DNA from: Pseudomonas aeruginosa PAO1
GTDB lineage: Bacteria > Pseudomonadota > Gammaproteobacteria > Pseudomonadales > Pseudomonadaceae
Assembly: GCF_000006765.1 (NCBI RefSeq)
Contig: NC_002516.2
Strand: one strand, 5' to 3'
Length of the DNA: 64,000 nt
How positions within the stretch are numbered: the first letter of the stretch is position 1; every line of letters starts with the position of its first letter. The notes beneath the pieces are model-generated. The model had not been told where the DNA came from. It saw only the letters and a list, made by a program, of their open reading frames with translations, and did not search any database. A program made the translations under genes and the position numbers. Positions 45,501 to 45,607 of the stretch are shown here, piece after piece.

Positions 45501-45530
45501 TTGATTTACTGTATGAATAAACAGTATCTT
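45501..45530 (+). promoter_or_regulatory. LexA (SOS) box inside a candidate sigma70 promoter
   Basis: TACTGTATGAATAAACAGTA (CTG-N10-CAG at 45509-45524) between TTGATT and TATCTT. Confidence 0.75.
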
Positions 45531-45534
45531 GAGC

Positions 45535-45603
45535 GCTCCCCCCTTCGTGGCCATCCCTGTTGGCCATCCCAAGGCAGCTCGTCTCTCGAGCTGCCTTTTT
45601 CTT
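45535..45603 (+). ncRNA. Putative SOS-induced small RNA (~70 nt); ends approximate
   Basis: Lies between the LexA-boxed promoter and a plus-strand terminator; no SD-led ORF. Confidence 0.45.
45571..45603 (+). terminator. Plus-strand intrinsic terminator
   Basis: AAGGCAGCTCG-TCTCT-CGAGCTGCCTT then TTTCTTT; minus-strand tail is only TT. Confidence 0.8.
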
Positions 45604-45607
45604 TGTC

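Follow-up and report, generated by a model that had tools for sequence, protein, structure and literature searches.

A LexA box heads the small RNA candidate P3, convergent on the error-prone polymerase operon of Pseudomonas aeruginosa

Inspection of a 64,000-nucleotide stretch of the Pseudomonas aeruginosa PAO1 chromosome (contig NC_002516.2, called hereafter the window) revealed, between an rrn operon and the convergent imuA-imuB-dnaE2 operon, a compact unit in which a LexA (SOS) box is framed by promoter-like hexamers and followed by an intrinsic terminator. The unit corresponds to P3, a candidate of the sRNAPredict2 screen for small RNAs (sRNAs) of Livny et al. 2006 (PMC1524904). Its best reading, and a reasonably probable one, is that of a free-standing small non-coding RNA gene whose promoter would be occluded by the LexA operator. 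The locus itself was already catalogued; its apparent link to the SOS response, the strength of the constraint acting on it, its restriction to one species complex and its likely descent from the imuA leader are what the present analysis would add.

Results

A self-contained unit between the rrn operon and dnaE2

Within the window, the operator pattern CTGT-N8-ACAG is found at two sites, this locus and position 50790, where 0.6 are expected. The extended motif TACTGTATNNATNNACAG, with up to two mismatches allowed, matches at the same two loci only, for 0.03 expected per window. The P3 box conforms to the CTGT-N8-ACAG pattern and is near the gamma-proteobacterial consensus. A preliminary description of the window had called this box near-perfect; the arrangement TTGATT-TA-box-TATCTT and the bracketing of the mutasome operon by two LexA boxes, which it had also put forward, were both recovered.

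The imuA-imuB-dnaE2 operon occupies the minus strand, and its dnaE2 gene encodes a protein that shares 99% identity with the error-prone DNA polymerase of P. aeruginosa. On the other side of P3 stands the rrn operon, with the 16S gene (40096-41631), two tRNA genes, the 23S gene (42103-44993) and the 5S gene (45138-45253). No gene was found on the plus strand downstream of P3 and no open reading frame (ORF) is conserved in it (see below), in keeping with the proposal that the box heads no protein gene.

The LexA box is separated by 46 nt from the terminator stem, which is followed by TTTCTTTGTC. The preliminary description had assigned the 11-bp stem and its T tract to the plus strand alone, close ahead of the dnaE2 stop; the terminator scanner agrees, calling no terminator on the other strand. 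The 77-nt transcribed interval folds with a predicted energy of -31.1 kcal/mol (z = -5.6). The C-rich stretch, the direct repeat (45548, 45561) and the GGCCA/TGGCC hairpin exposing a UCCCUGU loop are all present as first described. The predictions leave both the 5' stretch and the hairpin 1 loop unpaired, and neither differs between the clades, as would suit a seed. Promoter-like hexamers, an intrinsic terminator, an intergenic position and a length of 50-300 nt, which together characterize a free-standing sRNA gene, are all found here (Table 1). From this arrangement we infer LexA control and the start site.

Table 1. Features of the P3 locus and of its surroundings, in window coordinates
Feature	Position	Strand	Remarks
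rrn terminator hairpin	45268-45296	+	
Published P3 annotation	45481-45594	+	PAO1 727481-727594, offset 682000
-35-like partner TTCCGA of TTTACT	45482-45487	+	17-nt spacer
Conserved segment TGAAGGGAATCGC	45488-45500	+	left palindrome arm; upstream of the promoter; complementary to the C-rich 5' stretch
-35-like hexamer TTGATT	45501-45506	+	4/6 consensus; 18-nt spacer to TATCTT; TTGCTT in P. paraeruginosa
Alternative -10-like hexamer TTTACT	45505-45510	+	overlaps the left box edge, as in the imuA promoter; read from the sequence
LexA (SOS) box CTGTATGAATAAACAG	45509-45524	strand-neutral	TA and TAT flanks, same as imuA box
-10-like hexamer TATCTT	45525-45530	+	TATCGT in P. paraeruginosa
Candidate seed, C-rich 5' stretch GCUCCCCCCUUC	45535-45546	+	predicted single-stranded in minimum free energy and centroid structures
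C-rich segment CUCCCCCCUU	45536-45545	+	within the transcribed region
Hairpin 1	45547-45567	+	7-bp stem GUGGCCA/UGGCCAU, 7-nt loop UCCCUGU; unchanged in all copies
Direct repeat TGGCCATCCC	45548-45557, 45561-45570	+	hairpin 1 holds copy 1 and the start of copy 2
Intrinsic terminator	45571-45606	+	11-bp stem (45571-45597, 7 G-C pairs), 5-nt loop, tail UUUCUUUGU
dnaE2 / imuC	45608-48703	-	error-prone DNA polymerase, 1031 aa; convergent with P3; stop-codon complement 45608-10
LexA box of the imuA-imuB-dnaE2 promoter	50790-50805	strand-neutral	second box of the window
imuA promoter	TTGACC 50832-27, AATACT 50809-04	-	17-nt spacer

P3 is more conserved than its surroundings

The unit is present at the same position in P. 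paraeruginosa (the PA7 clade, DnaE2 90% identical). Between this clade and the window, identity reaches 97% over 45491-45580 (per-30-nt comparison), against 82% in the final 600 nt of dnaE2; in the spacer 45305-45465 it is 39%, a random level. Similarity begins at about 45488. The spacer separating rrn from P3 also differs in length between the clades (about 160 versus 175 nt) despite its conserved flanks, and looks as if it had been replaced rather than having drifted.

Four-fold degenerate sites of dnaE2 are 26% divergent between the clades. At this rate, the probability of finding at most three differences in 115 nt, the terminator loop being set aside, is about 1e-11 under a binomial law. 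By this comparison the unit is under strong purifying selection, which acts on its sequence beyond structure alone. The sequence also upholds the idea of a self-contained unit of box, promoter hexamers and terminator, convergent on dnaE2.

Each promoter hexamer differs by one base between the clades (TTGATT to TTGCTT, TATCTT to TATCGT), TTG and TA...T being kept. In P. paraeruginosa one nucleotide is missing from the AA at 45570-71, at the boundary between linker and terminator stem; the stem thereby loses its outermost A-U pair and counts 10 bp instead of 11. Four of the five bases of the terminator loop are changed. The LexA box, the 5' stretch, the stem and loop of hairpin 1, the other ten terminator pairs and the T-run are unchanged.

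Within the species, eight main-clade P. aeruginosa contigs beyond the window (five metagenomic) were compared. All of them are invariant from hairpin 1 through the terminator; variants occur upstream of the -10 hexamer, at 45477, 45487 and 45508, and just past it, at 45534 (C>T). The LexA box CTGTATGAATAAACAG is unchanged in all 20 P. aeruginosa and P. paraeruginosa copies compared. The conservation that the preliminary description had named as a check is found: the unit is kept in the P. aeruginosa copies and in P. paraeruginosa. One P. paraeruginosa Logan assembly (SRR32024425) has five C instead of six in the C-run of the seed, which is either a true length variant or a homopolymer assembly error.

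P3 is confined to P. aeruginosa sensu lato

A set of 22 Pseudomonas-family loci from outside the aeruginosa clade was inspected, 17 obtained by a genome scan (Pseudomonas, Stutzerimonas, Ectopseudomonas, Thermomonas and one Stenotrophomonas metagenome-assembled genome) and five by exact protein. None of the 22 has a P3 copy 3' of dnaE2. Downstream of dnaE2, the 17 scanned loci have unrelated DNA and no LexA box; the same is true of the closest species, namely P. jinjuensis and P. schmalbachii (DnaE2 81% and 79% identical, respectively), P. knackmussii and P. paralcaligenes. In P. citronellolis, another close species, a LexA box is found past dnaE2, and it heads a Peptidase_S24 gene, not a small RNA. 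Searches with nhmmer and blastn across all fetched loci returned LexA boxes and one weak match, in Pseudomonas sp. BN417 (see below), and no strong copy. A metagenome scan for CTCCCCCCTT-N3-GGCCA-N7-TGGCC gave five matches, all of them to this P. aeruginosa locus. Across these searches, the unit is confined to P. aeruginosa sensu lato.

The P. citronellolis gene (locus L103, 6280-6700) encodes a 125-aa LexA/UmuD-like Peptidase_S24 protein, has its own box (CTGTACATACATACAG, at 6678) and is convergent on dnaE2. The mutasome operon of that species is likewise bracketed by two LexA boxes, the second heading a protein gene.

No reading frame is conserved

Reading frames at P3 are broken or altered between the clades, as expected of a non-coding RNA. 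On the plus strand, an ORF starting at 45477 has ATG in the window but GTG in several strains, and the P. paraeruginosa deletion shifts its frame. The frame opened by GTG 45547 meets no stop ahead of the terminator, and its peptide is wholly different past residue 8 in P. paraeruginosa. On the minus strand, a 40-aa ORF (45567-45445) spans the box; both substitutions are nonsynonymous in it, and it counts 27 aa in P. paraeruginosa. No Shine-Dalgarno sequence was found upstream of any of these three starts. The small conserved toxin ORF, usually hydrophobic, that an SOS-induced type I toxin-antitoxin locus would have is missing.

P3 in published catalogues

Window positions were converted to PAO1 numbering with an offset of 682000, which we take to be correct from the PAO1 rrn coordinates. 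It is supported because the 114-nt span of the published annotation then extends from the point where conservation sets in as far as the terminator, and because the copy of IHMA87, a PA7-like strain, is about 8 nt shorter, matching the onset of similarity near 45488.

The preliminary description did not recall the RNA as described; on this point it has to be amended, since the locus is P3 of Livny et al. 2006 and appears in the tables of Wurtzel et al. 2012 and Trouillon et al. 2022. The sRNAPredict2 screen joined predicted terminators to BLAST-conserved intergenic blocks, and P3 is missing from its table of 31 northern-tested candidates (PMC1524904). The supplement of Trouillon et al. 2022 places P3 on the plus strand of PAO1 (Table 1), at 4951686-4951800 (-) in PA14 and at 4881671-4881776 (106 nt) in IHMA87 (PMC8913705). 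In Table S6 of Wurtzel et al. 2012 it is listed with 115 nt, a terminator, the mention 'P. aeruginosa specific' and no ORF; its expression there, measured without DNA damage, amounts to 18.4 reads per kilobase per million (RPKM; 28 °C) and 4.5 RPKM (37 °C), and few entries in the part of Table S6 covered here are as low (PMC3460626).

LexA and SOS are absent from the text of all three papers. The LexA link of P3 seems to be unreported: in the part of the full-text literature covered, nothing ties the locus to LexA, although it could figure among the 113 LexA-associated candidates of SIPHT, and it was not found in the portion of their list (Livny 2008, Table S4) that was available. The locus is not listed in the Ferrara 2012 catalogue, and the portion of an Hfq RNA immunoprecipitation sequencing table that was covered has no peak at P3; a '49517' match in that portion is a decimal fraction, not a coordinate.

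Similarity to the imuA leader

The only nhmmer match outside P. aeruginosa sensu lato (E = 0.034) lies in the region upstream of imuA in Pseudomonas sp. BN417. This imuA leader has, colinear with P3, a LexA box, a C-run, a GGCC...GGCC hairpin, a GGCAGC...GCTGCC hairpin and GTTTTTCTCTTT, with a box-to-stem spacing of 49 nt, versus 46 nt in P3. Downstream of the box, the local alignment of the two sequences scores 33, a value reached by 0.45% of shuffles (p = 0.0045). In the P. aeruginosa group, imuA is preceded by C/U-rich leaders in which CAUCC(C) motifs recur, reminiscent of the P3 repeat TGGCCATCCC.

The two elements differ in layout: the BN417 leader is in sense orientation, 5' of imuA, whereas P3 stands past dnaE2 in the opposite direction. 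The BN417 leader also doubles as an upstream ORF of 27 codons, its stop overlapping the start of imuA (TGATG), whereas P3 has no conserved frame. We infer the origin of P3 from this comparison: with moderate confidence, it may have been born by duplication of an imuA promoter and leader, and have later become an independent gene.

Upstream ORFs of 11 codons with the same TGATG overlap are found in P. jinjuensis and P. schmalbachii. All three ORFs start with ATG-GCC (BN417, L014 3885-3970; the two others, L082 ~925-960 and L084 ~920-958). The overlap suggests translational coupling to imuA, and the terminator-like hairpin inside the BN417 ORF would allow an attenuation-type control.

The imuA start of the window (region 50700-50800, minus strand) can be placed at several codons. 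An in-frame TTG at 50773 gives 223 aa, and the proteins called in other strains measure anything from 201 to 251 aa. The shortest of them would begin at an ATA codon at 50707, which follows GGACGAGG (AAGGAG in P. paraeruginosa). Between these two candidates lie 22 codons that are poorly conserved between the clades. Further upstream (~50868-50900), between imuA and a divergent heme oxygenase gene, lies an AT-rich palindrome, aataacgattctcaattatattcgttattga, that resembles a Fur box and is kept in P. paraeruginosa (L081 800-835).

Discussion

Proposed mode of action

On the preferred reading, that of a free-standing RNA gene under a LexA operator, LexA bound at 45509-24 in the undamaged cell would block either candidate promoter and leave P3 almost silent. 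After DNA damage, RecA-stimulated cleavage of LexA would free the promoter. Depending on the start used, the transcript would measure about 70 nt (start ~45535-37) or about 90 nt (start ~45517), and it would end at 45604-06, 2-6 nt short of the dnaE2 stop. Such an RNA would expose an unpaired C-rich 5' stretch, GCUCCCCCCUUC, then a hairpin showing UCCCUGU, and would close with the terminator hairpin and its U tail.

The 23 unpaired bases of the 5' stretch and of the hairpin 1 loop are invariant at a neutral divergence of about 26%, while the terminator loop is free to change, and this therefore points to sequence-specific recognition. The likely mode of action is base pairing in trans, in which the seed would contact G-rich sites, probably those of ribosome-binding regions. 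This mode of action and its targets remain readings of sequence. P3 is moreover perfectly complementary to any imuABC transcript that runs beyond the dnaE2 stop. A terminator scan from 45608 to 45208 found no minus-strand intrinsic terminator, and imuABC transcripts should therefore traverse P3; the first strong hairpin with any T-run that they would meet past it is the complement of the rrn terminator. An antisense or interference effect on imuABC is likely whenever both promoters fire.

A more ambitious picture may be sketched, which we hold to be possible but doubtful. P3 would be the first stand-alone LexA-switched regulatory RNA of Pseudomonas, built from an imuA promoter and leader copied to the opposite end of the mutasome operon, and would serve either as a C-rich regulator of SOS-phase translation directed against ribosome-binding sites or as a decoy of the leader, its seed being masked in read-through transcripts. 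As a decoy, P3 would mimic the C/U-rich imuA leader, titrate whatever binds it and tune the error-prone polymerase after damage. As for masking, the arm 45488-45500 would hide the seed in RNA read through from the highly active rrn operon, so that only LexA-released transcripts would be active.

Observations that weigh against this reading

Several observations go against a LexA-switched, trans-acting P3. The sole published expression data set has P3 barely above zero (PMC3460626). Near-silence in undamaged cells is also what is expected of a LexA-repressed gene.

The promoter is another such point. TTGATT and TATCTT total 8 of 12 matches to the sigma-70 consensus, and the promoter scanner, whose threshold is 9 of 12 hexamer matches, does not report them. 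A rival pair, TTCCGA-17-TTTACT (7 of 12 matches), shares the geometry of the imuA and BN417 promoters, in which the -10 hexamers are AATACT and TTAACT, respectively. The predicted start is at ~45517 for this pair and at ~45535-37 for TTGATT-18-TATCTT. With these two geometries and a published 5' end at 45481, the start of transcription is, as far as it can be predicted, ambiguous. A promoter on the minus strand beneath the box was considered and set aside, no acceptable hexamers being seen by eye and none found by the scanner. The promoter scan detected no promoter-like site upstream of the unit on either strand.

The third point concerns the sequence surrounding the box. The LexA box is central in an imperfect palindrome of 50-60 nt, whose arms were placed by a repeat search at 45492-45512 and 45521-45541. 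The left arm (45488-45500) is kept in P. paraeruginosa, whereas the DNA farther upstream is not. A plus-strand RNA covering 45480-45607 is predicted to form three hairpins (-54.7 kcal/mol, z = -7.2), the first of which pairs 45489-45504 with the C-rich 5' stretch. Just two substitutions separate the clades in the promoter region; these, 45504 A>C and 45529 T>G, affect pairing partners and turn an A-U into a C-G pair. Either of them alone would cost the plus-strand fold about 2 kcal/mol. On that strand, two variants found among strains, 45534 C>T and 45508 A>G, still pair, as G-U. Across copies, 220 of 220 cells of the structure are paired. The covariation amounts to three events only, with 28 of 500 shuffles reaching the observed values in control (a), and the minus strand folds nearly as well. 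The pairing hints at a longer plus-strand RNA or at a feature at the DNA level, neither of which the simple model requires. It could mean a longer RNA, masking of the seed in rrn read-through, a DNA-level feature, or a coincidence at two hexamer positions under weak constraint.

Targets, finally, did not emerge. A duplex scan of the whole window gave no convincing one, the best sites being off translation starts; a candidate site at 24773-24802 was discarded, as it lies inside a coding region. Pairing of P3 with the imuA leader did not exceed the shuffled background in either clade. The anti-Shine-Dalgarno action suggested in the preliminary description came from base composition only, and neither the leader test nor the pairing test within the window lends it weight.

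Alternative explanations

The alternative we take most seriously, though we consider it rather unlikely, is that P3, through its RNA or merely through being transcribed, acts in cis only. Transcription towards dnaE2 and pairing with the 3' untranslated region of imuABC would then govern the 3' end, the stability or the amount of imuABC mRNA, much as GadY does at the 3' end of gadX or by transcriptional interference, with no targets in trans. The stretch from the dnaE2 stop to 5S that lacks a minus-strand terminator fits well with this, as imuABC transcripts should overlap P3 and be fully complementary to it; LexA boxes stand at both promoters, which would fire together, and the P3-like element of BN417 is also physically joined to an imuABC cassette. 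However, antisense pairing is kept whatever the sequence, which leaves the 23 invariant unpaired bases unexplained, and most other Pseudomonas cassettes lack such a downstream element. The palindrome raises another alternative, that the functional RNA is about 125 nt long, with a 5' end near 45481 and a hairpin (45489-45546) that carries the box at its tip and masks the C-rich stretch. LexA would then be a roadblock, or else the long form would be a masked, inactive product of rrn read-through. The three-hairpin fold, the fact that all variation in the palindrome pairs (an A-U pair replaced by C-G through a double change, and two changes to G-U), the conserved left arm beyond which conservation stops, and the annotated 5' end at 45481 all speak for it. 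But no promoter-like site lies upstream, where the two clades lack conserved DNA; the BLAST-conservation rule of sRNAPredict2, rather than mapping, probably gave the annotated 5' end; and the covariation suffers from its few events, the shuffles and the almost equal minus-strand fold. We judge this longer RNA improbable.

It is more improbable still that P3 is a functionless, decaying duplicate of the imuA promoter and leader, conserved by a need for a hairpin at the 3' end of dnaE2 or by recent gene flow. Its similarity to the BN417 leader, its almost absent expression and its presence in a single species complex are what such a remnant would display, yet P3 is more conserved than the adjoining coding DNA while the adjoining spacer is entirely replaced, and P3 still has its box, both stems, the 5' stretch and the hexamers' key positions (TTG, TA...T). 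A need for a hairpin would not by itself fix unpaired bases, and gene flow would have homogenised the 3' end of dnaE2, which is only 82% identical. Least credible of all is an SOS-controlled small protein or type I toxin, on the model of tisB/istR or dinQ/agrB. GTG-GCC at 45547 does align with the ATG-GCC of the imuA upstream ORFs of BN417, P. jinjuensis and P. schmalbachii, and a 40-aa minus-strand ORF spans the box, but neither start has a Shine-Dalgarno sequence, the plus frame runs without a stop into the terminator and changes register at the 1-nt deletion of P. paraeruginosa, and the minus ORF takes two amino-acid-changing substitutions and differs in length (27 versus 40 aa).

Comparison with known RNAs

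A functional parallel is DinR of Klebsiella pneumoniae, a LexA-controlled, Hfq-dependent sRNA that derives from dinI's 3' end and represses ftsZ in trans; according to the same paper, SOS-induced non-coding RNAs are otherwise parts of toxin-antitoxin pairs (PMC10907235). Like DinR, P3 would be a base-pairing RNA switched on by LexA cleavage. Unlike it, P3 has its own promoter-like sequence outside any mRNA, and the two have no sequence similarity.

In Escherichia coli, IstR-2/tisB and other SOS type I toxin-antitoxin RNAs are small transcripts directly under a LexA box. Loci of this type pair the RNA with a gene for a small toxic peptide, whereas P3 has neither a conserved peptide gene nor sequence similarity to them. 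E. coli GadY, a cis-encoded sRNA overlapping the 3' end of the convergent gadX, illustrates overlap as a known mode of action. P3 is like GadY in its convergent layout and its complementarity to the 3' untranslated region of its neighbour; the difference would be that the overlap is a mere consequence of position for P3, whose sequence constraint points further.

An Rfam scan of the window at gathering thresholds returned no family at P3. Below threshold, 45536-45600 was matched by Hrs13 (RF02631, 21.9 versus 52 bits) and mmgR (RF00519, 18.8 versus 41 bits), scores so far below gathering that membership was rejected and the likeness is one of design only. Hrs13, from Erwinia, has the same overall layout as P3 and shares with it the UCCCUGU loop in the first hairpin; it differs in being limited to that genus, abundant without stress and free of any SOS link. 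The alpha-proteobacterial mmgR also has this overall layout, with C-rich unpaired motifs.

Other observations at imuABC cassettes

In Achromobacter pestifer (L064 3680-3770), a hairpin with a T-run lies 51 nt from the LexA box of imuA, on the opposite strand, after a C-rich interval, GCCCCCGCGCGUCCCUCU; a divergent LexA-linked small RNA may thus exist beside this beta-proteobacterial imuABC cassette. Past dnaE2 in P. schmalbachii (L084 6041-6762), a PhdYeFM antitoxin/PIN toxin pair starts within the last 26 nt of the gene. In P. paralcaligenes (L105 6536-9347), dnaE2 is followed closely by a gene for an OLD-family TOPRIM/AAA ATPase and then by one for a UvrD-like helicase, a pair that resembles a Gabija-type defence system. 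The DnaE2 proteins of Thermomonas sp. LB-4 (72% identical) and of the Stenotrophomonas metagenome-assembled genome (68%) are as close to the P. aeruginosa protein as those of many Pseudomonas species, which would fit a horizontal spread of the cassette.

Significance for the SOS response of P. aeruginosa

When P. aeruginosa is exposed to antibiotics, it is the SOS response that drives tolerance of damage and mutagenesis; the LexA regulon of the species is generally presented as a small group of protein-coding genes. Few LexA-controlled trans-acting RNAs are, to our knowledge, known. If P3 is induced by DNA damage, a candidate catalogued since 2006 would acquire a function, and an RNA layer, attached to the operon of the error-prone polymerase, would be added to the SOS response of a major pathogen.

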